A stretch of DNA of 64,000 nt from Cyanophora paradoxa CCMP329 (lineage: Eukaryota; Plantae; Glaucophyta): the NCBI GenBank assembly GCA_004431415.1, contig QPMI01000049.1, positions 279,245 to 343,244 on the forward strand. The letters are read 5' to 3'. Below are positions 4,255 through 64,000 of the stretch, piece after piece; the first letter of the stretch is position 1; the number at the start of each line of letters is the position of its first letter. The notes below the pieces were generated by a model. It saw nothing but the letters and a program-made list of their open reading frames with translations, was not told where the DNA came from and did not search any database. The position numbers and the translations under genes are program-made.

Positions 4255-4516
4255 CCGTGTGGCACTAAATTACCGCGGCATAAATTACCGCGGTAAAAAC
4301 TCCGGCCCGAGGGTGGCCAAAATACCGCGGTACCAAATTACCGCGTTTTAAAAAACTTGAGGCTTGTATGGGGAGGTAATTGTGGGGGGTACTGTATGGA
4401 GCGAATTGGCTGCAGCATATTACCGCGGTACCAAATTACCGCGTTTTAACAAATTCTCGGCGCGGTAATTTGGTACCGCGGTAATTAAGTGGGCGCGGTA
4501 TTATAGTGCCACACGG
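4255..4516 (-). mobile_element. MITE-B copy 2 (inverted relative to copy 1)
   Basis: Same TIR and TA TSD. The reverse complement is highly similar to 3853-4114, with a diverged central patch. Confidence 0.92.
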
Positions 4517-8100: not shown

Positions 8101-9666
8101 CCCGCCGCACAGCTACGCCTAGCCTGAAACGAAGACGTCTGGTTTGATGTTTATCGCTGCGGCGCGGCCGGGCGGGCAGGCGGCGCAGCGGACGCTGTGC
8201 GATGAGGCCGTCCGCGAGGCGGTCCTCTCCCTCGCCGCCTCCCGCGGTCCGTCCCGCCCCGCCCCGCCCCGCCCCGCCCCCCCCTCAAAATTCCGCCCCG
8301 CCCCGGCACGGACTCTCTACTGAGATCTAGAGCTGTTCCTCGAGAGAGGCCCGCCCCGAACCCTCGAGCTTAAGTTTGAGGCGCCATATCTGAAACTAAG
8401 CAACATTTAAAACATTTAATTGAGCTCAGCACTCCGCCCCGCTCGGACTCTCTCCTGAGAGTCCGTGAGAGGGCGTGCCGGTTTTCGCTCTGATTCGCCG
8501 CGCGCCGGCGCGCCCTCCGCAGGGCGGCGGCCGACGGTCGCCTTCGACGCGCTGGCGCCCGTCACGTGCAAGGGCTTCCCCCACCCCCTCCACGTGCGCG
8601 CGCCCGCTCACCCGAGCCCCGCCCGCTATGTTTGGCTTCGTTCGCAACCCGCGGTCGCCCGGCCGGCGGCCGCGGCCCGCCTCTCTGATCGCGGGCCGGG
8701 CGGGGGTACCGGTAGGTCTTTTGCCCGCGGGAGCGGGGCGAGGGCGAGGGGGCGACGGCTTCGGAGGCGGACACGGCGAGCGACTCGGGCGCCGGCACGG
8801 GCCCCCGCCCCCCTCGGGCGCCGGCGCAGGCCGCCTCGGCCGCCTCTCCCGATCCGGACCGCGAGGCGCCGCGCACGCCAAAGACTCCCAAGACGCCGCG
8901 CTCGCCCTTGGGCGCGGGGGCGGCCGGCGCCGGCCGCGACTGCGACCCCGCGCCGCCTTCTCCGCCTCCGTGTCGGCCAAGGGCGGCTGCTTCGGGTTCA
9001 GGTTCAGCTTCCGCCGGCTGGGCCTGCACGCTCCCGCCCTCGTCGGCGCGCCCGGCCCCGTCTCATTGTCGAAGCTCCTCATCGATTCGCTTTCTAAGTA
9101 GCCTCGCAGGGCGGCGGGACGAGGTGGCGGCGGCGCGGCGGGCGCTGGCGGGCGCCGCGGCGGCGCGGCGCGGCCTCACGGTGGTCGTCGAGGCAGAGGC
9201 CGGGCTCGGTCCGCGCCCGGCCCCACCCGGCGGCCGCCCCTATAATAACTTCCTGTTTGAATTCACGGCTTGAACTGACTGACACGGCCTGATCCCTCCG
9301 CCGGCTTCGAATTCGATCCGCGGCAGGCAAGACCGCTCTGCTACAGGCGCGCCCGGCCCGGACCAACTCCCGCGCCCCGCGCCCCTCGCCGATCGCGACT
9401 GTCTGACCGGCGGCGCCGCCCGCCCGCCCGCCCGGCGCGCGCAGGAGGTGCAGCGGGAGTGCTTCCAGCGGGGGGTCACAGTCCTGCGCACCGCAGCCGA
9501 GGCGACCGAGGTAGGAACAAAACGAAACACGATTGCTGCTCGGCTCTGGATCTAGATCTGTCGGACCGTTAACGCGGAGGATCGATGTCGCACTCGCTCT
9601 AGATCCGAGCTCTAGATCTTAAGGCCTCGCCCCGCGCGCTTCCTCCTGGGTCCGACGGTCCCCGCG

Positions 9667-42100: not shown

Positions 42101-43286
42101 ATCAAGCAGACTCCAGCTTGATGCATATGTTGTCAAGCGCAGTTCAAGCACGGGGCGGGTCGCCACTTGCACGCGGGGCGCCTCGGCCCCACGTATGCGT
42201 GGCTTGAATTCGAACCGCGCGCGGCCGGCGCTCCGTAGCAGAGTGTACATGTGCACGTGGCGGCCGCAGCGTCGCAGCATGCGCAGCTGCTCCTACAGCT
42301 AGTACGTCGCGCCGGACTCCTACAGCTGACGCCTCGCGATCGGCCCTGGGGCGAGCTGACGCCTCGGCCCTGCGCAGGCGATGCGCAGGGCCCGGCGCCA
42401 CCTGCCCCTCAGGGCCTCCGCCCGCTTCCCCGCCCGCTGCCCTGCCGGCTGCCTCAGCGCCGTCGACTCCAGGTTCGCTCCGCCGCTGCTGCCGCGCACC
42501 TGCATGCGCTGGCCCGGCCGCCCCCGCTGGGCCCCGCCCCTGCACGGCCGCCGTCCGGGGCGAGCTGACGCCTGTGCAGGCTATGCGCATGTGCAGGCTA
42601 GGCGCAGGGCCCGGCGCCACCTGTCTCTCCTCCCGCTTCTCCGCCCGCCGCCGCCTTAAGCTTCGCCTGCCTGCTTGCCAGGCTTGCCCGGTGCCGCCGC
42701 CCGCGACGCCACCCCACCTGCCCGCCTCGCCACCCCACCAGCCTCGCCCGGCCGCGCCGCCCGCCTCGCCTCTCTGCCCCCCCCCCCCCCCCCCCCCCAA
42801 GTACCCTGCAATGTACATGTGTACCAGTACCCCCTTGCACCTCCGCGCGCGCCCGCACTTGCCGCTCTTGCACAGGGCCGGGCGCGGTCTGCTAGTGTAC
42901 ATGTGCGCTAAATTCCATCACTGCCATCGGATGCGTAACATCCCCCTCCCGCCTCCCCTCCTTCCCCCCCCCCCCCCCCCCCCCCGCCCCCCTCCTCCTC
43001 TTGCACCTCGCGCCGCGGCGCGCGCGGCCTGCACGTGAACTGCAACTGTGCGTAGTGTGGGGGGCCCGCAGCCGGGCGCCCCGCCAGTAATTACTCCACT
43101 CCTACATGTACAGTATGATGCACCGAATCGTCGGTGTCACACGGTGATCATGATCACAGTCATGATGCACCGTCATGATCGTGCACGTGAAACGTCGGTG
43201 ATGCACGCGGTGACGTCAGGGCCGGTACCGGTGAATCGGCGGTGATCCGATGATCTGACTCTTTAATTCTTTAAATATCAATCGTT

Positions 43287-43590
43287 TACTATAAAAAAGG
43301 TTTCGTCCGACGGTCGTCGGAAGTATATCATATGGTATAGTCGTCCGACGGGCCGGCGACCGTCGGACGGCCCGGCCGGCGACAGGCCGGCGACGGTCCG
43401 ACGGTCCGGGACCGACTGGGAGTCTGGGAGACTGGGACTCCGGGAGTCTGGGACTCGGTCCAGAGTCTGGGACCCGGGAAGAGTCGGGGAATACGAATTA
43501 AGACCCGGCCGGCCGGAAGTCTCCGGCGACTCTCCGCGGATCCCGGAAGCGTCCGACGGGCGGAACTCGTTGACGAAGAGTATATACATA
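43287..43590. repeat. CCGACGG-repeat-rich segment, possible transposon end remnant
   Basis: Several direct and inverted GTCCGACGG / CCGTCGGAC motifs follow TACTATAAAAAAGG. Confidence 0.35.
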
Positions 43591-43942
43591 CAATGATATT
43601 ATACATCGTCTGGATTGACTCTACATAATAATGAGCTCGAGAGTGGATTCAATGACACCGTGGCACAATTGGCTTGTTTTTGAACCGTTTAACATTATTA
43701 GTCTTTCAAGTTTGTGAGCTTGTCACTCATGAATCACTGAGTCATATACTAGTAGATCATGATCGATATACTAAGATTCAGTCACTGAGTCTCCGACTCT
43801 CCGCTGCACTGCGGCAACTTCGAACTTCGGAATTCGCCGGCAAGGTTAAGCCTGCAAGTTGGCTGCAACTTGCCTCAACTTGGGCCCTCAAGTTGCCTGC
43901 CGAACTCAGTGATCATGACTAGTACAGTAGTAGTACTGTCTA

Positions 43943-44190
43943 CTGTAGAACTAGAAATATTTAGTGGGCTGCATAATTATAGTACTAAAAGTTTTTGGAC
44001 GATCTATATAGCTACTAAATATATTTTCCCGCCTGCTAAAAGCCGAGAATTCTTAGGGGTAGTCCCGTCTCCGCCATACAAGAAGCCCCGCGAAGACTGA
44101 CCTACTAAAATTATACCAGCTGCTGAAGCGGCAGTTTTGGCAAATTAAAGCACTAATTATTTTCCTGTACTAAATTAACCAGTTCTACAG
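43943..44190. mobile_element. MITE-E (TA TSD)
   Basis: TIR CTGTAGAACT / AGTTCTACAG, extending imperfectly to ATTTAGT. TA on both flanks. AT-rich interior. Confidence 0.8.
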
Positions 44191-44981
44191 TACTGCGGGC
44201 CTGCGGCCCGGCGGCCCCGGGCCCCGGCCCACCGGTGCCGGGCCCTGCCGGCCCCACTGCCGGGCAGTGCCGGCCCTGTGCCGGGCTCGCGGCCCGCGTC
44301 ACGGCCCGCGTGTGACGGCGATCCGATGATCGCGCGAGGACCGCGGCGAGGTACGGTCCGTACTATACTACGGTACGGACCGTACTACGGTACGGTACCG
44401 CCGGGCCGGCGCCGGCAGCCCCGTACGGTACTACGGTAGAGCCGGGTAGACATGTCCGTCCGGCCGCCGGGCCGCGGCCCGGCGCCGCCGGCCGCGGCGG
44501 CGCCGCGGGACTCGGGAGCCTTCAAGCTTCCGAGTTCGGCGCGAGAGGCGGCGCCGCGGCGGGACCCTTCGAATTCAGCTCCGTATATCCGATGATCTGG
44601 GATCTAGTATATTAGTAGTATATAGTATACGTACGCGTGCGCCGCGCACGTGCATGTGCATGCAGACCTGGACTCCGGGAGCGGCGCCGGCGCGTACAGG
44701 TTGAAAACAGCGATAGCGATAGCGGCGCGTACAGATTAACCGGTTGAAAACAGCTTGTGATATTTTACGCTGTTCTTTTCACCGCGGCACAGCTTAGCAG
44801 CGGTGCTGCAGCTCCCAGCGGCTGCGGTGCACGCACGGAGATGCCAAGGGAAGCTGCCGTACGCCGTTTCCGGCGTACGCGTGCGCCAGCTGCAGCTGCA
44901 GACGCCGACTGCAGCTCGAGCTCGGTTACATTACCAGATCCCGGACATGTACATCGACGTCCCACGGCGCGCACACGCTTG

Positions 44982-47442
44982 ATGCAAATGGCGACAGACC
45001 CAGAGACTTCGGATCCGACTTCTCATGCATATGATCATTGTAGCATCGGCTATGGCCGCGTTGACAGGATTTGCCGAGCTCGGTCTTTTGCCGTGGCTGT
45101 ATTGATTGTTCTGGCGATGTTTGCCTTCGCGCCAGTGACAAGGTCCCAGATGACCATGACAGGTACGCCCCTGAGCTTTCTCCATTTGCGATGCCGCGCG
45201 TGCGCGCAATTGGTGTTCAGTGAAGAGACTCAGCGACTCGGATCGCGGTCGCGCAGTTGAGAAACCCGTGATTACGAGCATTTTTCCGACTGGAGGGAGC
45301 ATTGCGGGAGGGCTCAGGTATGCAGACAACCGGCGTATGCGCGGCAAGTCCTGGCTTGTACTAAGCACATTTTGCACCTTTATCAGATTGACCATCAAAG
45401 GGACTGGGTTTTCGCCATACAGGGGCGACATGAAAAGGTGCGACGATCAATCATTAAAAGCCGCATCGCGCACGTGTGCCTCTCCTTTCACCGTACCTTG
45501 ACCACGCGCATGCGCATGCGCAGCTTCAACGACGTCCGCGTGGGAGGAGCGCCCTGCGATGTGGTCAGCGCGCGCCCGGCACTCTTCATTTTCGCCCCGC
45601 GCCGTGATCTAGATCTGACGAATGACAACTGCTGGCGCGCAGGTTCTTTTCCCGGCAGTCCAGCAAGCAGGTGCATCCTAGGCCTGCAGCTAGCGCTGCC
45701 AACGTCTGTACCTGGCTGACCTTCGGAATCGATACCATTGACATCCATCTATGCGCTGTTATTGTGCAGACCCATGCACCACGATCCACCAAATTGTCTG
45801 CATCACTTCGCCAAGGCCTTGTTACAAGGAGTCTGCGACTGATACCGAACTGCTTCTCTGTGAAGGAGATGTGCGCATGCCCATGCGCCGGGAATGACAG
45901 CGCCCTAGGCCTATATCAAGGCCTGCATATGAACGATGTAAGCTTGCAATTTTTGAGTTCCGCTTGCAGGTCGATGTGGTGGTCAACGTGGTGGAAGGAG
46001 ACACGATTCAGTCGACAACTGCTTCATCCAAGTTCCGGTACAAATATAAATCGTCAAAGTGCGTCGTCCATTGCGATGGCTTCGATGCACGTGCAAATAT
46101 GAATGTGCGCTCAACGTGCGTCTTCGCCCCAGCATGCCACTTTTCAAGTACGTAGAACCGTCATATGGCAGTTTTGGCGACAAAGCCACGGTAAGTTTTG
46201 ACGACTAATCTCTAGATCTGCGAAATTCGATGCTCTGGTTTTCGATGGGAATCCGATACTGATTAACACATCGACGCAACACTCTATTCTTCGAATCAGG
46301 TTCACATTGATGGTAAGCGATGGGCTGGAGCTCTTTGAATAAATTCCCGTCGATTTTCGCTGATCGCGGGGCTGCTCGTTTCGCAGGCACAACGTACGCC
46401 CCCAAGGACCGGTTCTGTAATGATCGTGCTGCCTGAAACTAGCCACACTCTTTCTCGCAGCACCTGGTATTATGTTGCGAATGGGGCGAACGGTGATGGC
46501 ATGCAGAACATTGCGATCACCACCGGCAACCAGGAGGGTCGCTTCGTTCTTCGCAATCTCTCTGCACCGTATGCACGCACGCGCAGCTCTTTGAATTTCG
46601 CCCCGAGACTCACGTTGCGTTTTCAAGGGACCGCGGGTGGTTGCAGCCTGTAGAGGAGTTGGACCCGGTCACCGGCAGGGCCACTGTGTAGTGCGTACTG
46701 CGGACATCTGCTAAACTTCCTGCCGCCCTTTGTTTCTTTTCTGCCGCATTTTTTCCTCTTTTGCCGCATCCTTTATTGGACATGCGATCCGGCATCTTTT
46801 TCTTCTTCTGCCGCCTAGGCTGGCAAAGCACCGCTTAAACTTTTGTCTAGTTCCCTTGGCATTGTCTTGCTGAAGGTCTCTCGCGCCGTATGCAAACGCT
46901 TTCGCTTTCGCTGATCACGAGCAACGACGTACACTCAGCAACTTCGCAACGGGTCTCGTGGGTCAGAGCGCCGCGGGATCGTACGTTCTTCGAATTCAGG
47001 CAAGCAGTGCCGGGCGGGGCTCGCTTTCTTTTCTGTGATTGAACTTTCTGTATTCGCAGTTCGACAACGCACCCGATCCTTCCGGCTATGCAATCGTTCG
47101 CGAGAGCAGCAAGCAAATGGACATCCGGGGCAATCGCTACACATTCCAGGTGCGAACACGTGTGCGATCCTGATCATGTTCTACGATGCGAACTGACGTC
47201 CGGATCCCTTGCAGGTCGTCCCTTCAATCAACGCTGTGTCTGCTTCGCGCTCTTCAACTGAAGGAGGACTGCAAGTCACAATCACCGGCACGAACTTTGC
47301 GGGCAGCGCCGTCGCGACGACTGCGAGGGTCTCAGGCGTCGAGTGCCCCGTCAGCTACTCGACCTGGGACACGGTGGTTTGCACGACGAGCAGGGGCACG
47401 CCGCCTGCGGGCGGGCAGCTCGAGCTCTTCCCCGGCTCCCGA
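44982..47442 (+). CDS. Fibrocystin-L/PKHD1L1-like IPT/TIG-repeat surface protein, 5' part; interrupted by a transposon
   Basis: Hydrophobic leader AVAVLIVLAMFAFA. TIG repeats PVITSIFPTGGSIAGG..LTIKGTGF..VRVGGAPCDVVS and PSINAVSASRSSTEGGLQVTITGTNF...VSGVECPV...VVCTT. Then ELFPGSR, comparable to the YPGGRG motif after the early TIG repeats of fibrocystin-L, is cut at 47442. Confidence 0.75.
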
Positions 47443-47461
47443 CACTGGGAGCCAGAAATTA

Positions 47462-47660
47462 AGTTTACCATATGGTAAACTTAGGGTGTGGTAAAGTTGT
47501 GCTGTTTGCGTTACACCACTGTAAAGTCACCAGGGTAAAGTCGCCGGGGTAAAGTCAGGGTGGTAAAGTTGTGAAAAGCGGGGTAAAGACGTCGGTGTAA
47601 ACTCGCCGAGGTAAAGTTGGCGAGGTAAAGACGTCGGGGTAAACTCGCCGAGGTAATGTT
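47462..47660 (+). repeat. Subterminal repeat array (about 12 GGTAAA(G/C)-type motifs, first one inverted)
   Basis: AGTTTACC, then GGTAAACT, GGTAAAGT, TGTAAAGT, GGTAAAGT, GGTAAAGA and so on, mostly spaced 13-18 bp apart. Typical of CACTA transposase/TnpA binding arrays. Confidence 0.85.
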
Positions 47661-47929
47661 GGTTTCGGTGCAGCGGTTCACTTTTTTACGTTTTTTTGCT
47701 TTTTTTTATTTTTTCTGTAAAAGCTATCTATAGCAGCCCATCTTCAAGCGATACTGCGCGCGAGCTCTATCCTAGAGCTAGCTAATCGGTTTGATGAATG
47801 CTTCGTATTCCTGAAATCTGCAGCTGGGACGGAATTCTTCTTATTTGCGTGCGCATGCGGACTGGCGGGATGCGCACCAGCCTGGCAGTCATTAATCAAG
47901 CTCATCTCCACCAACCTGGCTGCGGTGCG

Positions 47930-49290
47930 TAGTCATCTCCTCCTCGTCCGACGACAAGCCGGACTCATCCCATCAGGAATATTTGATGCCACTGCTGCAG
48001 CTGATTTCCCTGTGGCAAGTGTGACCAGCAGGTCCAGTGGCTCTGAACGTGATGAAGATCCTTGCTGAAGTGTCACGTCCATTGCAGTCTCCTCCTGCAT
48101 CATGATGTTGCAGCAGCGACACAAGGAGAGGAGAGTTAAAGAATGAACGAACCAGGAGACGGACATTAGCGTCCTTGAAGAAGCGACCGTAATCGGCAGT
48201 CGCTCTTTCGAACTCGGGATTCTGAACGCGATGGAGCGAAGAATCGGCTTCAAATCGGCGCGCGATCTCTGCCTCATCAGCCTCGTTCTGTCGATGCCGA
48301 GATTGCTGCTCGGCCTGCTCAGCCTGAAGCTTCTTCATGTCCTCATCATTCGAATTCTGACTGTCTTGGCTGGCTGCGTTCGACTTTGCTCTCATCTCTT
48401 CCTCCTCCAGCTGCCTCTTGTCCTTCCGCTCTTCCTTTTCGCTTCAAAGGCGTCGCGGTACACCCATTGCTCAATGACCCAGTCACCAGGCACATGAATC
48501 TACGGAATCATGAGTCAAAGTGCTAGCCGTCCAGTATTTCATATACTTCTTACCACGTCACTGCGACTCTTTGCCAGCAAATCGTGCAGCTTGTTGCTTG
48601 AGCCGAATCCGAGCTTATCAGCGACCAAAGTCGGTGGCGTCGGCGAAACTCCAAGCCAGTATGCCCTGAACAAAAGACGTCAAACATGTCGCGGATTTTT
48701 GCATTATTGATGCGCAATCACATCATATCCTGATCCGCGACTGTGTCTTTCAGAGGAGTATACACTCCGTAGATGGATACTCTTGAAGATCGTATTCTTG
48801 CAAGCATGGCGCGTACCTGCATTGGAAAATCATAAACATAATGCTTGATGCGAGAAAGACAACAATTGAATGGCGCACGACCCCAAACATGAAATGGCCT
48901 GGCTTCGTGCGGAATCCGAGGAAAGCGGGAACAAGGAAGCCTTTCTCGGTCTTCTCCCAGTGCGTAACGAGAACGCCGCCAGGGTCCGTTCTCGAGTTTG
49001 TACTCCAGCCGGAGTTCAGTACGAATAGCGTCTTCTGACCAGAAGGGGGCTCGGCCTCGTGCACTTTCCAGATCCAGATCCCGGAGATCCGGCTGGCGGC
49101 GGCGGCTGAAACGGGAGTTTGACGAGGACCCGCTGATTCCGCTCCCCATTCGCCTCGTTGTGCACTTTCTGAGAGTCGAATTCCAACTCGTCTTTGAGCT
49201 TGAGAGCAGCTAGCACATCGCGACGGATTCGCTGGTCTTCCGTCTTGCTTCGCTTGGCTTTCGGAGCCTCCATCTGCGGCATATGCAAGT
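47930..49290 (-). CDS. Transposon-internal hypothetical gene A (spliced, frameshifted)
   Basis: Coding-like exons MEAPKAKRSKTEDQRIRRDVLAALKLKDEL, FWSEDAIRTELRLEYKLENGPW, AYWLGVSPTPP and a charged coiled segment. No family recognised. Confidence 0.55.
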
Positions 49291-49546
49291 CAATAAGCGC
49301 ATATGCAAGTCAATAAGCAGACATATGCAGCCGGCAAGTTTCACCCACACCGCCAATGTCGAACTGGAATTCAGCGAATCGTGATCAGCCCCCCCCCCCC
49401 CCCCCCCCCCCCCGAAAGAGAAAATCCCGAAAGAGAACCCTCGAAAACCGCATGACAAAATAAGAAGTGCAAAACGCTCGCAAAGCAAAAGCGCAAAGCG
49501 GCAATTGAGACGCAAGTGAATTCGCAAATGTGACTTGAGCGACTGC

Positions 49547-50212
49547 GTCCATCTCGAACACCTAGCTGCACCGGTCAGGTTGCCGGGTTCCGGACCTGCC
49601 CGTGCACGTGTCGACTTCCTCTCTTTGCAGAGCCCGGGCGTACGCCGTCCATCTCGAACACCTAGCTGCACCGGTCAGGTTGCCGGGTTCCGGACCTGCC
49701 CGTGCACGTGTCGACTTCCTCTCTTTGCAGAGGCCCGGGCGTACGCCGTCCATCTCGAACACCTAGCTGCACGGTCAGGTTGCGGGTTCCGGACCTGCCT
49801 GTGCACGTGTCGACTTCCTCTCTTTGCAGAGGCCGGCGTACGCCGTCATCTCGAACACCTAGCTGCACCGGTCAGTTGCCGGTTCCGACCTGCCCGTGCA
49901 CGTGTCGACTTCCTCTTCTCTTTGCAGAGGCCCGGCGTACGCCGTCCATCTCGAACACCTAGCTGCACCGGTCAGGTTGCCGGTTCCGGACCTGCCTGTG
50001 CACGTGTCGACTTCCTCTCTTTGCAGAGGCCGGGCGTACGCCCTCCATCTCGAACACCTAGCTGCACCGGTCAGGTTGCCGGTTCCGGACCTGCCGTGCA
50101 CGTGTCGACTTCCTCTCTTTGCAGTCGACTTCCTCTCTCTGCAGAGGCCCGGGCGTACGCCGTCCATCTCGAACACCTAGCTGCACCGGTCAGGTTGCCG
50201 GGTTCCGGACCT
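49547..50212. repeat. Tandem array of about 6.5 copies of a ~100-bp unit
   Basis: Unit GTCCATCTCGAACACCTAGCTGCACCGGTCAGGTTGCCGGGTTCCGGACCTGCCCGTGCACGTGTCGACTTCCTCTCTTTGCAGAG..CGTACGCC begins near 49547, 49647, 49748, 49845, 49944, 50043 and 50162. Confidence 0.95.
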
Positions 50213-50219
50213 GGCTCTG

Positions 50220-53200
50220 TCAAAATGGCTCTGATGGTGTGTTATCTGCAAAAACGCAAGCGCGAGAGCAATGTGCAGGCACGCTTTTGCATGAACATCT
50301 AGATAGATGGAAAGAAGGGATGAAGAGCAAAGACAGCGTGTGAAGAGAAATTGACAGAGGGCACACGTTTTTCACAGAGGCTTCGTCACCATCATCGTCC
50401 TGATCCCTATTCATTGGTTCATTAATGACACGCAAATTATGAGCAGCATTTATGTAAATATGTCGATTGACACGACCGAAGAAAAATTGCTCACTGATCT
50501 CTTCGAGCCCTCCTTCCTCCTCCCCTCCTTGTTTCCCCTTGCTGGCCGCGCCAGCATGCTTGTTCCCGGCACCAGCATGCTTGTTCCCGCACCAGCTGCA
50601 GATGCCTTGATCCTCGGCTTTTTGGAGGCGACGGCACTATTTGCTTCGGACTCGAGCTCCTCCTGCATCGGTGGATCGATTCGATTAATGGATCGATACA
50701 ATTAAGATATAACGACGTGATGCATCAGAAGCAGGCCAGATGTTGGCTCGGATGCACTCGTGTTAGCAGTGCTCTTTTGAAGAAGATTTCCTGCCCAGAA
50801 AATCGCTCGTTTCGCTCCGTTCGCCACTTGCATGTTCGGCTGCACCGGACCGCAGTCATCAAAGTAGCAACGAAAACCATCTTGGAAAGACTACGTGACT
50901 TACAACCTGCGCGGCGTCAATCAGTCCGGTTCCACGTGCTGCACACAATCCAAGAATTCTGACTGACCATCTGCACCGCGATCTCTTTTGCGACGCCTTT
51001 CTTCATGTAGAAGTATGGAATCTGTTTCTGAACCCAAGTTGGACAAACAGATGTCACGACAACCAGATCGTGGGCGCTCTGTACGGCATCGCAAAGGGCC
51101 TCGTCACGAGAACACGATTACTGGCGCTCATAAGGTAGTATTCAACGCATGCACCTCCTCCAATTCAAACAGGTTGGCCCGTACAAGCTGCGGATTGACG
51201 AATGATAAATCCACACGGCCGACGTACAACCCTGTCCCGACTATCTCGGCTGTCGCATTCGGAGCCCCAACGTGCATCAAGTCCACCAGCTCGAACTTGT
51301 TGAAGCGCATCAGACTGTTAGAATCGCTTCCGGTGCAGCAAGGAACGATTCACTGCGAAACGAAATCAGGTACGTCAAGATATCGAAAAATGAACAACAA
51401 GTACTGAAGTCTCCGGGCTGATGATTTGCTTAGAGAACTTATCAACCTCTTTTGCCCGCTCGACTTCTCGTTTCTGCATGCGTTTCATCTTTTTCGGCCA
51501 TTATACAAGGTGCGCCGTTCTGTCGCAAGAATGAGAAACCGTGGACAGCACATTTAAGATAATGGCTGGCACACAGCCACAGTAGTCCTCCATTCCGTGG
51601 TGCGACTTTGAACAAGATATCTAACGTGACCCTTTAGCCATTCCGTCACAACCTTTTCCGTGAACGGCTCCTGACGTGGTATGTCGGTGAATGATGATGA
51701 TGAGGAAAACAAAGATATGAACCGGTGCTGGATTTCCGTCTGGAACTCCTTCAGGATAAACGCCGTTTGCTGTCATTGTGCAACAGGTGTACTTGAGGGC
51801 GAGAAGGATGCGTTGAATCAGCTCTGTAGCGGACCATCGGAATTTAAAAAAGATATCATATTCCGAAAAAGCGATTCGCACTGCTGTACGATGTTTTCAT
51901 CTCAAGCCAAATGGTTGCCCAAGTGCGTCCAAATGCCTGAAGATATACCATAAATTGATACGAATAAAAGGAGACCGAGCATTGTGAATGAAGACTCGTG
52001 GATTCTTTTCGTCGCGCCTTCCGAGAAGAGAAACCTGAGCGTGGTTGGCGTTTTGCAATGGAAACTGAATGGAAATCTGAACTGAATGGTGAATGCAAAT
52101 CCGAACCATGCGTGATGGCCACGCAATCAACGCCCACAGGAAGCGCAGTGTCGTAGCTGTTTTCTCGGAGCTTCGCGAAGAGTGCAAGAAGAGCTTCACG
52201 CTGCCGACACGGATTTCATCAAAAAAATGAATCCGGTCATAAGGACATGAAGAAAGCGAACAGCCATCGCGATGACTGGTGTCTGCGGCTCTGATATTCA
52301 ACGGTCCCAATCAGAAGCCGCACTGAAGCCTCCAGCGTTGCCTTGAAGTCTACAGGACTTGTGGACGGCCGCGAAGATCGTGTTCGAGACGTCTGATTGT
52401 TTTTGTCATGCGCACGTATGTTGGTCATGTTTTGATCATGTGCGTGTGTAATTCGAAAAACGCACCAAAGACTCTCATGATATCGTCGACAAGAGTCTGT
52501 ACTTGAAGAGGCCAAGCTCCTCTGGATCGTTCGCAGGCTGCCTGAGAACCGATGCTGTTTGTGAGAGCGTAAGTTCTTCAACGTGCGATTGCAAACAGCA
52601 ATCGAGTTCACCCCACGCATTGGCGTTACTGCGACCGCCCGAAAGCGGTGCGCAGCGAGACCCGCGTATGAGTTCTCCTTCTCCGACCCCTCGCGGTCGG
52701 ATCCATCGTTTTGTTCTCATCGTTCTTCTGAAGGATTGCTGTCGTCGATCTGCCGACTGTATTCACGCTCTGATTCTTCAGAATCTGCGCTTCCCATCAG
52801 TTTGCGATAGCAATACACAACAGCAGGACCACATTCGAGCAAGGAAGCAGCGTTCGCCAAAAGCGTCATCGGCTTCCACAAAATCAGAGGCGTAACCGGT
52901 GAAGAAGAAATTGCAGACACAAAGAAAGACAGCACCTTCAGAGGACCTCCTTTATCAGCAGTCTGAGGGCAAAGCACCGACCAGATTTCAGACCGGCAGC
53001 ATCGATATTCGAATGGTGAAACAACGGGAAATCACCTTCAACGAAGGAACTGCCGCTGGAATATTTTCGCCAGAGACGGTTGCTGCCTGAAGCAACAGCA
53101 ACGGCAAAGGTTTCAGCACTCGGCATCAGCATTCGAACGCTCGAATTGCTGAAGAACACCGTTTTGAAGCGGCCGCCAGAGGAGTTTCCGGCCTGAACAT

Positions 53201-53960
53201 GTGAGGAGAGCTCTTAGCATCGGCTGTCAAGTCCATAAAGCGCTGGATGCATGCACACCGCTGGAACTGGAACGGGTTCTCCGCCTTTGCTTCGGTTTCC
53301 ACAGTTCGGGACCTTCCAATAGCTGCACATGTAGTGTAAGCTGTTATACTAGCGGGACGAGTAAGACTGCGTACATTCAACGCAAGTATTTCTGGCCAGA
53401 GTGCATCTCCTCGCCGCTTCTTGATTTTCTGCCAGAAGAGCATCAAAATTTGAAGGATCAATATCAACATCGTCTGCCAGCAAGTCACAGGAGCTGTACA
53501 GGGAATCAACCTTTCGCAACACAGCTTCGTATTTGCAAAATGAATGCGCACGTGATGAGGCCAAGCGTAGATCGATGTCGCGAACCTCCTGAGCAGCAGC
53601 ATGAAGCTCTCTTACGCTCTTCATCGCGTCTCCGAGAACAGGCGGAATGACAATTTTGCTCGATATCGGTAACACTTCGTTGGCTTCTTCGACTGCAGCT
53701 AGAAAAGCTCGTTCGACGTTAAAAACCTGATTGGAACCACGCCCGTTGGTCTAATTGCGACGATTGCATAGAAGGAACCTAACGTGGGCGCACGTTGTCG
53801 TATCATAGTTCATGTGCACGGCCGGAGGTTCTGCACGTCCACAATCTCTGTGGAGCTAATGAAACGATTGCAACAGCGGCATATCCACAGCGTACGCGTA
53901 CACATAGACCTTGTGGAGCTCATTGAACAACGCAGTCCTCCACTTGAAGACATTTGCTTT
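50220..53960 (-). CDS. Transposon-internal hypothetical gene(s) B (spliced, frameshifted)
   Basis: Series of protein-like minus-strand exons, e.g. VFNVERAFLAAVEEANEVLPISSKIVIPPVLGDAMKSVRELHAAAQEVRDIDLRL, DPEELGLFKYRLLST and MRFNKFELVDLMHVGAPNATAEIVGTGLYVGRVDL. No family recognised. Confidence 0.5.
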
Positions 53961-54161
53961 TCGTGCTACGATTACTGCGCAGGCTTGGTACCGCGGAAAA
54001 GCGCACCATAGTACAAGCATGCGCACCATTTGCACGCTAGCTTCCGCTGGGGTCGCGGTAACGCATGCACGCCACTAGTGCTCACTGGCGCCGCGGGCTG
54101 GCCATTGGGCAGTCAACTCTGCGAACAGCGCTAAGTGACATTCTGTTGCTGTCTCATTGCT

Positions 54162-54283: not shown

Positions 54284-57200
54284 ATGGTCGAGATGCTCCA
54301 CGCCGATGTTTTCAAACTGCGCCGTGTACCCCCGGGGGGAAGAACCTGGAGCAGCGGTGCGAACCACGCCATGCAGCGGTCAGAGCGACTGCGGTGCGAA
54401 TGTCAGAAGTGTCAAGGCAAGTTAGTGCGTCCTGAGGTTTTCAATGCACATCAACTGCTAGCGCACACCGGATTCAGTAGCAGCGATCGGCAGTCGAGTG
54501 CCCTTGCTCGCGCTGCAATGGAAGCGCGTCTCGTCTTGGTGCAAGGATACATTTGCACCTAGACAAATATGGATCCAGTCTAGTAGAGCAAGCTGCCCGG
54601 AGAGCTCCTGTAAGCGATTTCGTTCCTTTCGTAGCCGAAGTTCTTGACGTACCGATCCCGACAATTTCGTTCGAGCGGCACTAAGAAGACGACGATTAGC
54701 AGCCCGGCAGCACTTCAAGGCAACGAGCGACAAACAGATTCCAATTCGAAGCGCAAACGTGTCAACAATAAAGCCGCTCGTATGCTGCGAAGCTGGTAGA
54801 TATACTGATCGTATTGGTCCTCAAGAAAACGGCAATGAACCTGGACATGATCCAATATCGTCGATGCATCGATGGCGATGATCATGCTCATGAGGCTTTC
54901 GACGACCCAGCCGCAGAGGAAGGCCAAGCGGACGACATACGTGCAGACCAGCTAGGCGGATCAAGTGGATTATGGCTAGAGTCGATCAGGACGCAGCGCT
55001 CGACGGCTCAGATGATGAATGCACTACCAACAGGCAGAATTTTTATTCTGAGCCTCTTTTTGAGGGCTGTAAAGTGTCGGTGCGTGCTGGAGCATTCAAT
55101 ACATTGCTTGATATTGGCTGTATTGGCTTTTTAACTTTCTCTAGCGCATGGATTACATCACTTTTTGCCTCGCATTGAAGAAACGCTTTACACAAGCACC
55201 TGTTGAGATGTTTGCATCAATCAACGCGGCTGTGTCTCTCATCATTGAGGCCAACAAACTGCAACGAGCAGCTCGGTCTTGGAAGAGAATGATTAGAGAA
55301 ATCCAAGAATTCGTAGCGGTAAATAATCAACCACTTTCAATTTCGTGTTCGAACGTTAACATTCCTGCTCAGCCTTCCATCACTTTCAGGACATGTGGGT
55401 ATAAGAGACAAAGCACAAGGTGGCGATTTGCAAGACAGTCTGGATCGAAGACGGAACTGTTCTCCAAATACAGTCTGCGAGTGTGCCATTCAACCTATGC
55501 CGATGGTGTGGTGGGCTTCTTTTTTGATCCGACCGGAGTTTTCAGCAGCTACTGAACAGTCCTTCGTATTATCCCCGGTTCCAGTGCGTTGATTTCGATT
55601 CTGTCGTGCGGCCACGGCTGATCAAATTTACACAACGGCGTCCAGTTACGGCGTTCGAGCAATACAGATTGGGGCGATCGTGTTCCAGATTACTATTTGC
55701 GGTCGCAAGAATCCGAAACCCAACATCTCACTGGCGACTTTGTTCAATCAAGACTTTTCTCTTCTCTTCACGAGGAGGGCTGTGTGCGAATTCGGACGGT
55801 CTTGGAGTGTGTGCGCATACTCTACAGATTCCGCAGTGACGCAAGCTGGTCATTTCCACACCTACAGCTTATTCTGAAAACTGGACTCTAATGTCGTGTT
55901 TCTAGGTCCACGGCGCTCTTTCACCCCTGTGTTTGTGTACCTATGTCTGCGCATCCTAATTGGCGGTGCGTGATCATTATCTCGCTTTCCGCTTTTCGCC
56001 ATTGTCTCACCCCGTTTCGCTCAGAACAGCAATGCAACGCCTTGTTTTTCTCATGGATGGAAGCGAGAAACTTCGATGAATGTTCCGCGTATTCCTTACA
56101 CCGTGCTTGTTGCCAACAGCCGCCGCCCCAGGAGTCCCCGCTCCGAAGCCAAGGTTTGCATGCCTTATAATCTGTCTCTTTCTTTCAATCATTCAATACC
56201 GTTGAGCAGAGTGGGTTTTGCAATCCTCTCACCGGCAAACTGACAAGCATATTTCACAATGGCTCTCAATATCGATGACCTCCCCGGATGCGCAACGGCA
56301 TTTATGATAAGTTCGCGTAACGCATCCTTGCGCGGCTTTGTATTCCGGACAGAAACCTAAACTTTCTGCAGCGTCGCACAGTGGCGAGCACGGCCATCCG
56401 CTTCGGAAGGTGGATTTCTGGAAAGCGCAGAGCAAAACCGCCGGAAAAACATGTTTCAAGCACACGATCTCCGCTCAAACATGGATGCGGAGTTGTGCGT
56501 ACTGACCAAGGATCATGATAGACCCCATCTGCCCGAACGGACTACTGCATGTGCATCGAGCCGACGGACTGAAACGTTCCCACTGCAGCTGTTCTGACAC
56601 CTTCGGTACAGCGAGCCGACGGACATGCTGTAGAGTCCAACGCCAAAGATGGTTTCGGAAAGAGATTACGCAAACAGCTTTTGTTCAATTGTGAAAACGA
56701 AAACCTTCGGTAAACCTTTTAGAATGGATATAAGTGAACATCCTTCGAACGCGCCGTCCATTGAATTGTCTCTGACCAGGCGTTCAAGGCTTGCCGACTT
56801 TAGCGGATGGCCACACTTTCGGCTCGCCCCTATGCGACTTCAGCGAGAGCGACTGGAGTTCCTGCGGCATGGCGAGCTGAATTTCGACATGGGTGTTGAC
56901 CGTTCAGGGGCGCGGCATACTGACGAATTCCACCTCGTCAAAACCGTCTGGCGGATGTCTTCAACTATCTTCGCGGCAACGCGAATAATGGTGATAAGCT
57001 CAGTCCTACCTCGATTCAGTGTGTCGTTGCATCTTCCAACTTCCATTCGTGTTGATTTGCAACGTACAACCACTAACTTAATTACTTTCGTCAATGCGAA
57101 GTTAGCATCAACATGGATGTTCTTGTCCTTTACAGGCGCCAAGCGAAGCGGAAATACGCTGCGCAGAGCAAAGATGGAAAAGGATCGGCGACTTTACGAA

Positions 57201-59080
57201 GCAGCTCTCCGAAATGGCAAGCCTCCTCCACGCAGCCAGTCGACCTTGTCGCGGAACTCGAAGATAACGCGCCGTTTGCCTGGGAAGCCACTGAACGGCT
57301 GTACGATGCTATCGAGCGTGTTGCAAGGCGCGCACGATATCCGCACTTTTCAGAACAACGGTAAGAATTAAATTCGCCAGACCAATTTAAGTGAAGTTCG
57401 CATTACAAATCGAGAAGAGCGAACTTTGATGTTATAATTAGACTAGCAGGAGTAACCATGTGTGCAGATGGACGAACCGTCGTTTTACGGACTGACGAAC
57501 TTTCAAAGTTCGCTATTGCAGACGTGGCAGGCGACATTCTGCATGGTCTTGATGCGGATATGGATAACAGAATTGCCTCTATCGGATCCTCGTAATCATC
57601 ACTGGACGTCCTGCACGGCATTGGTCGAAGTAACGTTGAGAAAGCAAAGGCTCCGACACGTCCGTGACGTTGTAACATTGTTTATCCGGACTTCTTGCTT
57701 GAACTCCGCAAACTAGCAGTTTACAAGGGTGCGAACGTCACTACGTACCCGTGCCGTTCTGGACAATGTATGCAGCTCTCGTTGTATGCGTGCGCGAACC
57801 ATTGGCTGTAGCTTGCCTGCAATCGGCTAAATGTGCGAAGAGTGACGGATGCATCGAGCTGGGCGGCCAGCAGTTTCTTCCCGTGGACGGAGCGGGCGGT
57901 CACAATGTGAAAGTTACTGCAGGATCGGGCACAATCACTCTGATAACGAGTCGGCCGACGAACGCAGGCAAGTTGTGAAAATATCTATTGCAATGCATAT
58001 TGAATTCGTATTGGACGTTTGAACGGATTTTGTTTGCAGAAATGGAGCCCTTGCCGTCCTGCAGCATGCACAAGCGGTTCTTGAACAAATTCACACCTTC
58101 TGACACGGAAAAGCCGGTCCATTCGGAAGGGCAAACGTGGCTACAGCTACGATATTCACACAGCTGGCGTCGATACAGTAAGAAAACCAACCAGAGCTGG
58201 GTTCATTCTTGAAGGAAGTTCGAAATTCGAATTCGCAATTGCCGCGCCAGCTGCAGATCTAGAGTCTAATCTGCCCCACATTGATGACAAACTCGCATTA
58301 ATTCTGCACAGTGATGACAATCACGATGAAGAGTACGGTGCTTAATCTCTTCGTTTTGCGAGCGGGAAGCTGTTCGAAATCCCCGTATCTGGCCGTTTTC
58401 TTCGACCTCTACGTTGACGAGCGAGAGCGATTCATAGAGACTAAAGGCACCTGTTGAACCATCCGGATATCGATCCGCCCTGTTTGTTCTTCGTGTCATG
58501 ATCAGCATGCGCACCCAGGCCGAGCTGGGAATACACGATAGAACCTGTATGCCGGAGCTGGGCCCTGGCTCCGTGATCGCACTTCTCCAGCATGCCTCGA
58601 GAATGGATTGGCGTCCCACCTCGAAAGGAACTATGTATCCTTGCTTTTACGCCAACCACCACCTGTCATTTCCAGCGAACTCTCAACCGACAAGCACGAC
58701 AGCTCATTCATGTCCTTATCGCGATGGTTCCCGACGGCAGCTCTGCGACGAGGGGGCCATCCCTACCCTATCATTCCCCTCGGGCGAATGGGTTACCTCA
58801 GCGCGAGGAGATCCAACGCATCCTGACCGGCGAGAGCCGTCCGCGCTTGCTCGTGCAGAGGCCTTTTCGAGTTCGCCCACGCAAAGCACCCGGGGTGCGT
58901 TTCGCATCATTCGAGCTGCGTCTACCCTTCTCAGCTTGCTCGTTTATGCCCAACTTGAACTGCGACGAATCGACATCACCAAGAGACCTCTCTGTCGTTG
59001 GTTGCCTGACACCATCGGCCTTGGCGCCTGATGCCTCTCCCCGACCACACATCGTCGCAATTCGAGCGTGTGCTCCCTAA
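54284..59080 (+). CDS. En/Spm (CACTA, TnpD/Transposase_21-like) DDE transposase; spliced and heavily frameshifted
   Basis: Motifs occur in En/Spm order: N-terminal CECQKC...FNAH; EPLFEGCKVS...TLL (cf. PLYEGC..S); catalytic-region MDG..F...YS..P...N..PP (about 56050-56140, across frameshifts); NIDDL..MRNGIYD...LRGFVF; TDEFHLVKTV (cf. D.MH..KNV); ARYPHF; and SYWTFER (cf. W.Y/F.FER of DUF4218). Confidence 0.75.
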
Positions 59081-59258: not shown

Positions 59259-59915
59259 ATGCAGCCGCAGAGCCTCGAGCCGGGCCTTTCGATCCGTCCT
59301 GGTGATAAAGCACACAATCATGATTCTTCTGATCATGAGCCCTTCGAGCTCGTGATCATGAAGCCTCAGGCCTCGGTACCAGGCGACTCGGCGAGCTCGA
59401 CGCATGCCAGTCATGATCAAAAGCTCGTGTCTCGTAGCAAGCAACCCTCCGGCCGCCTAGAAGACACACGGCGCTATGATGGGAGCTCGAGCCTCGAGAA
59501 AGCCTCAGCCTCCTTTGAGGCCCAGGGACATCGCTGGTCATAGACTCTAGATCTGAGAGCCTCGGAGCTCGAGCTTGTGATCATGTGCATCGGATCATGA
59601 CGCCGCTGAGCCTCACTGGCTCAGCCTCGGCAGCTCCCTTTGAGGCTCCGATCCCTGATCATGACTTAATGCAGCCGCAGAGCTCGAGGCCCGGCCTTTC
59701 GGATCCGGTCCTGGTGATAAAGCACACAATCATGATTCTTCTGATCATGAGCCCATCGAGCTCGTGATCATGAAGCCTCAGCCTCGGTACCAGGCGACTC
59801 GGCGAGCTCGACGCATGGCCAGTCATGATCAAAAAGCTCGTGTCTCGTAGCAAGCAACCCTCCGGGCCCAGCCTAGAAGACACACGGCGCTGATGATGGA
59901 CTCGAGCCTCGAGAT
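59259..59915. repeat. Direct duplication of a ~240-bp palindrome-rich unit (59259-59500 and 59669-59915)
   Basis: Near-identical copies ATGCAGCCGCAGAG...GATAAAGCACACAATCATGATTCTTCTGATCATGAG...CTAGAAGACACACGGCGC, lying between the convergent transposase and SET loci. Confidence 0.9.
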
Positions 59916-60099
59916 CCGCATGATGGGCCGGAGCCACTAGGACGATAATATTTAATTATGCCTCTGTCCCCTCATGATCAGCGAGGACGCTTATGCACAT
60001 GAGATATGACGTCGTGCATGCGCTGTGCACGTGTGAATGCCTGCAGGCCAGTTGCTTCCTCATCAATTCAAATCTATTACTTCCTATTCCTCAAAAGCT

Positions 60100-60875
60100 A
60101 CTCTCCTAATTCCTAATAAAGCTACATTCTCCCCTACACATAGATGCGATTCGGCTTTTGCAATTGGGTCGGCGGCACTCGGGCATTTGCATATTTGCTC
60201 TTGGCTGCTGTCGTCGAGGGGTTCCGACTGGAGCCCGGAGTCGTGAATCGAAGAATGTGGGAATGTGACTACGTCAGCACGTACCGAATACTTCCACGTG
60301 AGGGATCACCTGGCTCAATGTCTAACAAAGCATAAAACCCAAAACGATATCTGTCACAACCATCACTGTCGAAGCTCGACGTTCGGTTTGCAGCTGTGAT
60401 TCTGCAGCACTGGCCAGCCCCCGGCTGCCATATCCAGCAACCTGCACGCGCAGGCCTGTTCAAGCAAGTAGGAAGGTACTTGTAATTGAAGAAAGAACGG
60501 AATAACCAGTTGAGAAGATGTTTCAGTCGAACATGCGTGTGAGCCGCGTAGCTTTCGACGGGAACTTGCTCTGGACCTGTTGCATTTGTTCCCAGAAGCT
60601 CTCCCAAAACATGCCTGCTCGTATTCTGGGGGCCCACTTCGGGTTCGGATGCCAACACCACAGTCATTCTGCTCGTCGAAAACTTCACGAAATACTTGAA
60701 GACTGACCCCGATCTTGAAGTTCCGATTTCCGCATCGGTAGTGCCATAAGAGCAGTTGAAAGGAGTGCATGGTATTCGGAAACAATGTTGGCAAGCAGGA
60801 GAATCGCGGCAAAGAAGCAGACGTGACCCCGTGGCCCGAAGCAGACGCAGCAATCATGCTCAGTTGTTCTCTCAC
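60100..60875 (-). CDS. AWS-SET-postSET histone lysine methyltransferase domain (SET2/ASH1/NSD-like), frameshifted
   Basis: Cys-rich pre-SET segment HDCCVCFGPRGHVC / CRDSPACQHC..PCTPFNC / RCGNRNF. SET start CGVGIRTR and HVLGELLG. Signature LLDMAAGGWPVLQNHSCKPN (NHSCKPN at 60381-60401). Then RFGFYALLDIEPGD and a post-SET KC..ECRRPNCKSRI. Motifs are spread over alternating frames. Confidence 0.85.
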
Positions 60876-63800
60876 TGCCGCGCGAACAGCGCGGTCAAAA
60901 ATCGAACAGCGCTAGAACAACGCTCACGAACCGGCTTTTGGATATGTGGAAACTGGAAGTTAGAATTGTAAGCCTTGATAACCTCATTCATCCGCTTTTT
61001 TGCCAGCTCGATCCATCATGTGAAATTCGGGCCTGGTTGGAGGGCGAGTATGATAAAGTTCTGAACGTGTTCCAGATGTGCGGAGAGGACTCAATTCTGG
61101 AGTTCTGAGCTCGGACTTCCGAGATGTACCTGCAAACGAGCACATGAAAAGGAGAATACGAAGCTGAACCCTCCCGAACCTGAGTTCAAGTTCTTTGATG
61201 TGCTCTTCAGGGGAAGCCGTGATATCGTGATTGATGAAACGCGCCATAAGTGCAGAGTAAGTTTCTCCTGAATCTTCGAGAGAAATCGGATACGTGTACG
61301 AAGCCTCTTCTCGTATTCTTCCTCATGCAGCTGCCCTGTTGGGTACCACATCTGCAACGTCGGAGGCCTAACGGCGCCAGACGCGTCGAGAATGTCGTTC
61401 AGACATTCAGACAACTGGAGTAAGAAGTCGCCTGCATGGACTCCGCACTGCCGTTAAGCCTTCAGTACCGGTAAATTTCAGCAATGCGAGCAATTGAAAT
61501 GCCGACCGACAATGTGAACGCGTCCTGAGCAGTTGACGTGGAGCAGGGAAATAAATCGATTCGACAGACACGGTCCTCAAGTCGTGTTCCGGCAACCACG
61601 GTCACATCCTCGCATGCTCGAAAGCATCTCACCAGCGATGACAGCCGAGTTTTGAAAGTAGGTCCCAAGAGAATCGTAAAAAACCATTCCCGCCCATCCG
61701 AGAACTCAAAAGCACGTGACAGTCCTTTGCGATGAAAAAAATAAGCGAAACGATATTGTTATACGTTAAAGAATAGATTACCAGTGGAATGCCTCTCCAA
61801 TACGAAGCGCCCCGGGCGTGGTTGCGGTGCCGTTCCAGAGATGCAATTGGAGACAATGCTCTCAACGACATTCCATGAATTCTAGGGGTCGGATTCCAAG
61901 TTGACGCATCAACTGTTTCGCACCAACAATCTCCAAAACTGTTTATAATTATGCTCGAAATTAGCAATGGAAGACTTTGAAGATCATTACGCACAATTCT
62001 GCATGTGGATGTCATTGAAGGTCACCCAGCGTGTGCTCTGAAGAAAAGCGAAGCCTCCCGTGAATTCCGGCAACTCCGGCACGTCAGCAAGCGGACGCTC
62101 AAGTCTTCTGGTTCGAGGCGAAAACACGTGAAATGCGTCCACGTTGTACTTGAGTACAATCCTTGAGACAGTTCGTGGCCGAAGCCTTGCCTGCTTGAAC
62201 TGAATCTGAATTCCCGTCGATCACCTTGTTGGCGCAGCTGAGAATCCCAGGTATTGAAACGACCAAGAAGTCTGCAGTGATGCACATCGCGTTCGACCAT
62301 GGATGATGGGAAAGTTCTTTTGAAAAACAGGATGTCAAAACAGCTTGCTTAGAGTAAAAAGACAGCAACTTGGCCCACCAGGAGCCCGAGGCGCACTGAA
62401 CCGCAAGACGGACGAAGATTGATTCGCGATATCGTGTTCCATCACTTGATCACTATAACAGCGTGCGTTAATTCTGCATTCATCACATTAAACAGAGAAT
62501 AGGTGATCCATATGTAAGAAAAAAGGGAGCTCACCCAGACTTCCGAAGTCGCAAGCCCGGCTTCGCCGATAACCACTCTGTGCGTTGTGTATACGCCTCG
62601 ACAACGCAATCACTTTGGGAATTCGCTGAACATAACGGATCGGCACTGCTGAAGAAAGGATATCTGAAGTTTTTTGAAGCTTGCGAGAAACATCTGCAAG
62701 ATTTCGAATCCGACGAGTTTCTTCAGACGAAATGGAAGCTGCCTCTCCATGAGAGCAAATATGAGGCTGAGCTGCCTCAGAACGCCACCTGAACCTGCTC
62801 CTATGTCCGCAATCACAACCTCTGGCGAGTCCAGCTCCAAGTCGAGTTCCCTTCCGGCAAGACCCCCCGGAAATAACTCTGCTATCGTTTTGATGTCAAC
62901 GAGGCCGAGCTCGCCATAATTCAAAGATCGAGAGAGCGATCCAATGATGAGCTTTCATGTTGTCTTGTTTCTTCAGGAATGCTGGGCAGACTCTCCTTCC
63001 GGATATGAAACGCATATCTACACCGCTCCGCTTCATCCGCATAGCGACCATTTGTGACAACCCAGCGCGAGTTGCCAGCGCCGTGGAAGTGTCACATCGA
63101 CTGAATTCAATCATGCCACGGGAGCAAGAAACGACAGCGGGGCGACTTCGTTTTCTCGCTTCTGCGCTTCACTGGCTTGTCGCCTTCGATCACTCAGAAT
63201 TAAAAAACCAGAACATTTAGACGCTCGAACCGACATACGGAGCTGAAGCTAAGATTGGAGGACTTCGCTGCAGCCTGACGCCTGCACGCTGCTGCCGTGG
63301 TGCGCGATGCACTGAGTCAACAGATGCGTCTGAGAATTGGGATCGTCGTTCGCGCCGTATGGCTTCTGGCTGAAGTCTATTGCTGAGTCGTTTCCGGCTG
63401 AACGCGTTCTTTTAATTCCCTGGCCAGGCTCTGGTCCGAAATCAACGCCTGACACGCGGGGTATCAGTTCAGAGATGGAAACATGAGCCATGATTCATGC
63501 ATATGCTCACCGGGTATATTCTGAGTAAGGTAAGCCCAAATTTGATGCGTGTTCGGAAGTCGACCAGACGGTGTGCGAGCGGAAGGGTCCTTCGAATTCT
63601 TGATAGCGTACCGGTACCACGACACCCTCCAGTTGCTCAACTGTGGATGCGTTTTAGGCCGATCCGTACTGGGCTGCTGCGGTAGGTCGCTGCGCATGCT
63701 CTTCCGGCGCCGTTTGACGGTGACGGGCCGATGTGCAGCTAAAGGGCGTGGGAACTCATGATCATGATCACGATTCTCATGGCAGGTTGGCGAATTCCGT

Positions 63801-64000
63801 GCCGGAGAGCTGTTGGAAGAACTGCTTCCGCCTGGAAGCTGCAGCTGCTCTTCCGCCTGGAATAAGCGCTCGCTTTCGGACTCATCGCTCGCTGACTGTT
63901 CACCGTACGAAAAATCGGTCTTGGTACGATCAAGAGACCGCAAGTGAAGTTTACGAAGTTCCTCGGAATCGCCAAGGAGTCTGATCTTCAGAGCTAGAAG
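60100..64000 (-). CDS. Probable single multi-exon cargo gene D (low-complexity/NLS N-terminus, DOT1-like, linker, AWS-SET-postSET); start probably beyond the window
   Basis: Continuous run of minus-strand coding-like exons from 63943 (includes KRRRK) to about 60100, with no obvious intergenic gap. The fusion is inferred, not proven. Confidence 0.5.
62330..62940 (-). CDS. DOT1-like (H3K79-type) class I SAM-dependent methyltransferase domain
   Basis: NYGELG, then VVIADIGAGSGGVLRQLS (motif I) and KKLVGFEI (post-I). The next exon gives VVIGEA (motif II-like), then LTHA..YSD and ESIFVRLA. YGE upstream of D.G.G.G..L.Q is the DOT1 pattern. Confidence 0.72.

Follow-up and report, generated by a model that had tools for sequence, protein, structure and literature searches.

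The window analysed here, 64,000 nucleotides (nt) of contig QPMI01000049.1 (positions 279,245 to 343,244) from Cyanophora paradoxa CCMP329, carries on its minus strand, from about 60130 to beyond 64000, a gene with short introns that encodes a DOT1-like domain, an Ulp1/SUMO-protease-like domain and an AWS-SET-postSET domain, in that order (Table 1). The original prediction, made from the sequence alone, had placed here two transposon-borne histone methyltransferase domains, possibly in one fusion protein. Both domains are present, and all motifs quoted for them are located on the minus strand of the raw sequence, but the third, Ulp1-like domain between them had been overlooked.

Table 1. Features of the transposon and its cargo gene; motifs on the minus strand are given from higher to lower position.
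Feature	Position	Strand	Remarks
Host IPT/TIG-domain exon	47215..47442	+	interrupted by the insertion, outside the element; Pfam TIG E 1.7e-12
Left terminus	47443..47661	+	CACTG end, 24-nt palindrome (47460-47483), 14-nt subterminal tandem repeats
Uncharacterised genes of the left part	47700..54000	-	the last head-to-head with the transposase; open reading frame pieces without Pfam match; transposase-like composition
99-nt tandem array, left part	49546-50213		about 5.8 copies, 94% matches
En/Spm (CACTA)-like transposase gene	54300..58300	+	3' end approximate; broken by assembly indels
Internal tandem duplication, about 410 nt	59259-59914		between the converging transposase and cargo
SET C-terminal Tyr and post-SET Cys cluster	60130..60302	-	LTWKY, CxCxxC (needs one indel); intron 60284-60228
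post-SET Cys	60194-60160	-
LTWKY	60302-60288	-	SET C-terminal Tyr
SET domain	60303..60737	-	GVG, ELLG (Tyr to Leu), NHSCKPN; intron 60479-60442; colinear with L001 exons
FYALLDIEPGD	60337-60305	-	SET
NHSCKPN	60401-60381	-	SET
LGELLG	60607-60590	-	SET
GVGIRT	60659-60642	-	SET
RCGNRNF	60737-60717	-
AWS-type Cys-rich domain	60738..60860	-	aligns with L001 exon (Z 13)
Cys-rich AWS segment	60858-60743	-
Ulp1/SENP (C48)-like protease	61424..61850	-	His-Trp, FYDSLG, Gln-x5-Ser-Cys-Gly; introns 61781-61725, 61506-61448
DOT1-like class I methyltransferase	62140..62927	-	X NYGE, I DIGAGSG, II GFE, candidate VI ASG, VIII TTWT; intron 62534-62474
LVGFEI	62717-62700	-	DOT1-like
DIGAGSGG	62807-62784	-	DOT1-like
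NYGEL	62921-62907	-	DOT1-like
N-terminal low-complexity part	62928..64000	-	probably same gene; gene start probably beyond window

The DNA around this gene is best explained as a giant DNA transposon of En/Spm type, at least 23 kb long and with a CACTG end, inserted into a host gene. Specifically, the reading frame of a host IPT/TIG exon stops at the CACTG junction, the 3 nt preceding the junction (CGA) are a candidate target-site duplication, and the CACTG end at 47443 is followed by 14-nt subterminal repeats up to 47661, as in a CACTA/En-Spm terminus. The host-like DNA of the window (5-43 kb) has a guanine-plus-cytosine (GC) content of 68%, compared with 50-52% from about 47.4 kb onwards; for the long-read Cyanophora paradoxa assembly, with which the window agrees in GC and short introns, 67.6% GC and a mean intron of 86 nt have been reported (PMC6704402). 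The cargo gene has the composition of the transposase and of the element's left part (GC 0.50-0.52, against 0.68 in the host), and its 3-mer usage correlates with theirs (r 0.89-0.93) rather than with that of the host (r 0.09). The transposase gene itself has a weak Pfam match (Transpos_assoc, E 0.072) and returned no match in a word-index homolog search with one piece of it, and it contains the En/Spm-type short motifs CxCxxC (54395), PLFEG (55053), MDG (56053) and DLPG (56277); we assign its family partly from general features of such transposases and partly from the CACTG terminus. Transposase and cargo are convergent, share their composition and have no right terminal inverted repeat between them, as originally described, yet the cargo does not lie directly downstream, since about 1.7 kb, including the tandem duplication, separates the two. 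A right terminus in this interval was considered and rejected, as a search within the 64-kb window found no second copy of the left terminus between 47443 and 64000; nor does the window contain a right end matching the CACTG terminus.

The frameshifts that break the cargo gene stem from the assembly. In three DNA runs, which come from different samples, 59901-64000 is covered by one short-read contig; about 10,975 nt long, it lies on the window with 4,228 nt and differs from it by only 2 substitutions but 120 insertions or deletions (indels). The breaks are thus errors of the assembly (about 3%) and not decay. A decayed pseudogene was rejected accordingly, the breaks being absent from the short-read contigs. 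The same contig extends about 6.7 kb beyond the window end, which gives the element its minimum length of 23 kb. Contig depth is equal or nearly so in the transposase 3' region and in the cargo (1673/1804, 341/341 and 51-53/54 in the three runs), the contigs of the duplication stand at about double depth, and other contigs of the same runs that give short matches have 15-18 times lower depth than those of the element. We read this as an element present in roughly 15-18 near-identical copies, with transposase and cargo moving together, an estimate limited in that depth does not translate strictly into copy number, rare variants are lost from contigs and the duplication is not spanned by any single contig. 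Depth, composition and the left end within a host exon thus assign the cargo to a multi-copy CACTA/En-Spm-type element, as had been proposed; a single-copy host gene was rejected on depth and composition. It is also quite improbable that the domains are passively captured host fragments, in the manner of Pack-CACTA elements, or belong to another element or a host gene next to this one, without a role for the transposon. The short-read contigs do break at the 410-nt duplication, so that none spans both transposase and cargo, and the right end lies outside the window; yet the depth is equal on both sides of the duplication and double within it, the composition is far from that of host genes, the architecture and introns are conserved in a diverged relative, and a search of 1.8 billion representatives found no close host-like homolog.

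This relative was found with phmmer, in which the DOT1-like open reading frame (ORF) had one match among those representatives (P0001, E 3.2e-5, 48%), encoded on an 8.8-kb contig, L001. The DNA of L001 has no significant similarity to the window except a single 26-nt match, and the domain order is identical. In frameshift-aware alignment the exons are colinear for the DOT1-like domain (Z 21.7 and 11.7), the AWS region (Z 13.1) and the SET domain (Z 6.4-8.9); for the DOT1 C-terminus, Ulp1 and post-SET, exon alignment is no better than chance. Additionally, introns occur at matching places in the two, following the DF motif, within His-Trp, ahead of Cys-Gly and behind the final Tyr. Across 155 aligned codons, chosen as alignable, 46% of the amino acids are identical, while four-fold sites agree at 10 of 32; residues have thus been kept while silent sites are near saturation, which argues for long purifying selection on the cargo. 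L001 also resembles the element in its 4-mer signature (r 0.86-0.88, against 0.32 with host DNA), which makes a second mobile family probable. Upstream of its YGE motif, L001 has about 2.2 kb of plus-strand coding sequence, in keeping with a probable N-terminal part of the gene in the window. Scans of metagenome, viral and prokaryote contigs revealed no relatives. At 411-3087, L001 carries minus-strand ORFs head-to-head with the cargo gene, without Pfam match, whose counterpart may lie past the window end.

In the class I domain, the DOT1 motifs described in the literature follow one another in the expected order, in keeping with the initial description. These motifs are defined as X VYGE, I DLGSGxG, II GxE, IV NNF(L/A)F, VI Gx6K and VIII VSWT (PMC10951340), and motifs X, I and II read NYGE, DIGAGSG and GFE in the window and AYGE, DFGAGNG and GVE in L001. 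The ordered pattern YGE..DxGxGxG..GxE occurs only once in the six frames of the window. Motif IV is NNFKF in L001 and is obscured by indels in the window, and motifs VI and VIII are loose matches only. From these motifs, the domain very probably belongs to the DOT1 family. Domain searches were run on exon-sized pieces, exon by exon, and the window ORF pieces yielded no Pfam match for DOT1 (PF08123), SET or Ulp1; the DOT1-like piece matched no PDB structure either and had no match in the word-index search. Its AlphaFold model has a predicted local distance difference test (pLDDT) score of 43.5 and was uninformative in Foldseek and VIA fold searches, and the ESM Atlas gave weak-scoring generic methyltransferase neighbours and then nothing. 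Such results, together with the precedent of the red-algal PAG2, in which an N6-adenine methylase is joined to SET, would suit another S-adenosylmethionine-dependent enzyme, for instance a nucleic-acid methylase. We regard this as unlikely, however, given that YGE before motif I, GxE, NNFxF, ASG and SSYG/TTWT follow each other in DOT1 order, and that no DPPY/NPPY-type motif of the amino-methylases was seen.

Support for the AWS-SET-postSET domain from the profile searches suggested with the original prediction came through L001 and a joint profile. L001 reaches 23.1 bits for Pfam SET (cut-off 22.4) and 17.6 bits for Pfam AWS (E 0.0038), the latter below its cut-off of 23.3. The best matches among solved structures (PDB) are SETD2, ASH1L and NSD1-3, with NSD2/NSD3 the best, though weak, for AWS, and the joint profile matches ASH1L (E 2.4e-9), Set1 (1.6e-8) and NSD2 (3.2e-8) with scores so close that it is mainly the AWS domain that decides the class. 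A word-index homolog search with the L001 SET piece found only itself. LTWKY and the post-SET cluster of the window correspond to WDY and CKCSVC in L001, with the intron in common. The SET GxG, NH and C-terminal Tyr are retained in both (GVG, NHSC and WKY in the window; GTG, NHCC and WDY in L001). On the other hand, the Tyr of the lysine pocket (NSD1 Y1971, NSD2 Y1092) is Leu in the window, in a register that assumes one upstream indel; in L001 it is Cys. The RFxNH Arg (NSD1 R2017) is Val in the window and Tyr in L001. Loss of either Y1971 or R2017 abolishes the activity of NSD1, and the matching Tyr change in G9a, Y1067F, yields a trimethylase (bioRxiv 2023.03.13.532367). The SET domain may therefore be dead, weak or altered. 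Of the claim that this domain writes H3K36 methylation, the SET2/ASH1/NSD-type architecture stands, but with the NSD1 Y1971 and R2017 equivalents replaced in both families, the domain appears NSD-like in architecture and is not a proven H3K36 writer. In L001, a 16-residue in-frame insertion, or 48-nt intron, interrupts the NHxC..PN motif at 8262-8312; if spliced at the only fitting sites, a zinc-binding Cys would be lost.

Between these two domains, the C48 consensus of His-Trp, Asp and Gln-x5-(S/T/D)-Cys-Gly appears in this order in both the window and L001, with shared intron positions. In the raw sequence, the candidate catalytic residues are His 61784, Asp about 61675, within FYDSLG at 61681, Gln 61527 and Cys 61447, the intron splitting Gln-x5-Ser from Cys-Gly. 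The Ulp1 exon pieces have no Pfam or PDB match, align weakly with L001 (Z 1.8-3.5, the higher one off-target) and give an AlphaFold model with a pLDDT of 37.9 that was uninformative in fold searches. It is thus only the motifs and shared introns that suggest an Ulp1-like protease.

DOT1 and SET2/ASH1/NSD enzymes are normally separate host genes. Here, the three domains are likely to form one protein, as judged from gene layout: their tight spacing and their order, kept in two families, favour one gene, and L001 can be read from DOT1 to postSET in one frame with 10 short introns. Such read-through is not discriminating, as resampled sequence requires a minimum of 7-13 introns compared with 7 for L001.

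Each domain keeps catalytic residues (motifs X, I and II in DOT1, with IV in L001; His, Asp, Gln and Cys in Ulp1; GxG, NH and the final Tyr in SET). Located inside the element, homogeneous among its copies and conserved in sequence and domain order, the cargo stands, by analogy, about an even chance of being an anti-silencing (counter-silencing) tool of the element. Sir-type silencing, which DOT1 had been supposed to antagonise, is a budding-yeast system. The documented silencing of Cyanophora repeats is CpG methylation: they are CpG-methylated and silent (PMC12344493). SUMO is needed for recruiting repressive complexes to transposons (PMC9406493), H3K36me3 and H3K79me usually mark transcribed gene bodies, and SET or TET enzymes borne by other transposons have been proposed to act against silencing. 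We propose that the element would be briefly expressed and that the cargo protein would be carried to the element's chromatin by its N-terminal part or by a partner gene. There, the Ulp1-like domain would strip SUMO from repressive complexes, the DOT1-like domain would methylate a nucleosomal H3K79-type lysine, and the SET domain would methylate the H3K36 region, possibly with changed product specificity, or only bind nucleosomes. Re-silencing would be delayed, and the element could transpose. A broader claim must be regarded as tentative and rather doubtful, namely that this is the first transposon-borne DOT1, part of a single protein that methylates both H3K79 and H3K36 and removes SUMO on the element encoding it, and that such histone-level anti-silencing extends across several families of giant CACTA elements in a glaucophyte-like alga.

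Several observations weigh against the anti-silencing proposal. In addition to the missing profile and structure matches of the DOT1-like and Ulp1-like pieces, the replaced SET residues and the non-discriminating read-through, no transposase neighbour is established for L001, and four RNA-like runs of the same species contain next to none of the region's words. The latter is not proof of silence and is consistent with an element silent in culture. Moreover, the premise that both marks accompany transcription may not hold everywhere: H3K79me2 is repressive in brown algae, and H3K36me2 may repress transposons in Drosophila.

The SET replacements in both families also speak for a second reading, to which we assign a lesser though appreciable likelihood, namely that the cassette aids transposition, either by deSUMOylating or methylating non-histone proteins (transposase, partner or repair factors) or by opening target sites, with SET as a weakened nucleosome-docking enzyme. 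The bacterial DOT1 homolog LpDot1, which keeps the DOT1 signature, has non-histone proteins as its substrates, in line with such a role. Ulp1-like proteases are carried by many DNA transposons, which also suits it. However, AWS and the post-SET Cys persist, together with GxG, NH and the final Tyr, although silent sites are saturated, and loss of the first Tyr can raise the methylation state rather than kill the enzyme, as in G9a Y1067F. The repressive marks of brown algae and Drosophila and the four RNA-like runs would also accord with a cassette whose marks are repressive in this lineage and which limits the element itself or feeds host DNA methylation. This appears improbable, as a deSUMOylase suggests derepression and the family has recently amplified to many near-identical copies.

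Among the closest known systems are other transposons with epigenetic accessory genes. The red-algal giant Plavaka (EnSpm/CACTA; bioRxiv 10.1101/2025.02.11.637652) is likewise a giant En/Spm-type algal element with several accessory genes, internal tandem repeats and low expression, and its PAG2 fuses a non-SET methyltransferase to SET. By its description, however, the PAG2 partner is an N6-adenine DNA methylase (PF01555), whereas the cargo here combines DOT1-like, Ulp1-like and AWS-SET-postSET domains. Phytophthora HarbingerS, MuDR and proto-Helentron (PMC12730594, PMC4067079) are DNA transposons with a SET histone-methyltransferase accessory gene; they belong to other superfamilies, and the portions of these reports consulted describe no DOT1-like domain or three-domain gene. 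Transposon-borne factors have been proposed (TET/JBP of fungal transposons) or shown (VANC of Arabidopsis VANDAL) to counter silencing (PMC12730594), but these act on DNA methylation, whereas the targets of the present cassette would be histone lysines and SUMO. Binding to and modification of the element that encodes the factor are known for VANC only, and for transposon-borne SET enzymes the portions of the literature covered report no assays. Host DOT1/DOT1L and SET2/ASH1L/NSD share with the cargo the DOT1 motifs X, I and II (IV in L001) and the AWS-SET-postSET architecture, with SETD2/ASH1L/NSD as best matches; unlike them, the cargo is highly divergent, joins the domains with a protease-like one in one locus and has a SET domain without the NSD1 Y1971/R2017 equivalents. 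A 172-genome survey, in the part available, includes SET in its transposon fusions, reports DOT1 homologs from giant viruses and names no DOT1 in a transposon, and no DOT1-bearing transposon was found in the literature searched, outside which lie most subscription papers and Repbase. Transposon-borne epigenetic modifiers, including SET cargo in the En/Spm superfamily (Plavaka), are thus already known; of the pairing first put forward as possibly new, the novelty lies in the DOT1-like domain and the three-domain layout. If the proposal is true, a parasite would have brought together enzymes that write two gene-body marks and one that erases a repressive mark. The system would directly test whether such gene-body marks counteract the silencing of repeats in an early-branching relative of plants whose documented defence is CpG methylation. 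With the NSD1 Y1971/R2017 equivalents lost naturally while selection has long acted, the SET domain is also a test case for product specificity versus pseudo-enzyme roles.

Further features were noted in and around the element. A 25-nt C run from 49389 precedes the 99-nt tandem array, together spanning 49389-50213. A 9.7-kb low-depth contig of run X9 matches 58121-58163 and 58642-58666 with 449 letters between the matches, compared with 478 in the window, and is probably a diverged low-copy relative of the element. The insertion target at 44757-47442 is a secreted IPT/TIG-repeat (fibrocystin-like) gene with an intermediate GC of 55%, the remaining exons of which are expected past the element's right end. 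Just upstream, at 43148-44700, short palindromes and tandem repeats abound where GC switches from 70% to 55%, and this region may be the end of another element. At 3851-4518, an inverted repeat with arms of 266 nt (93% complementary), a spacer of 136 nt and short subrepeats resembles a small non-autonomous transposon.

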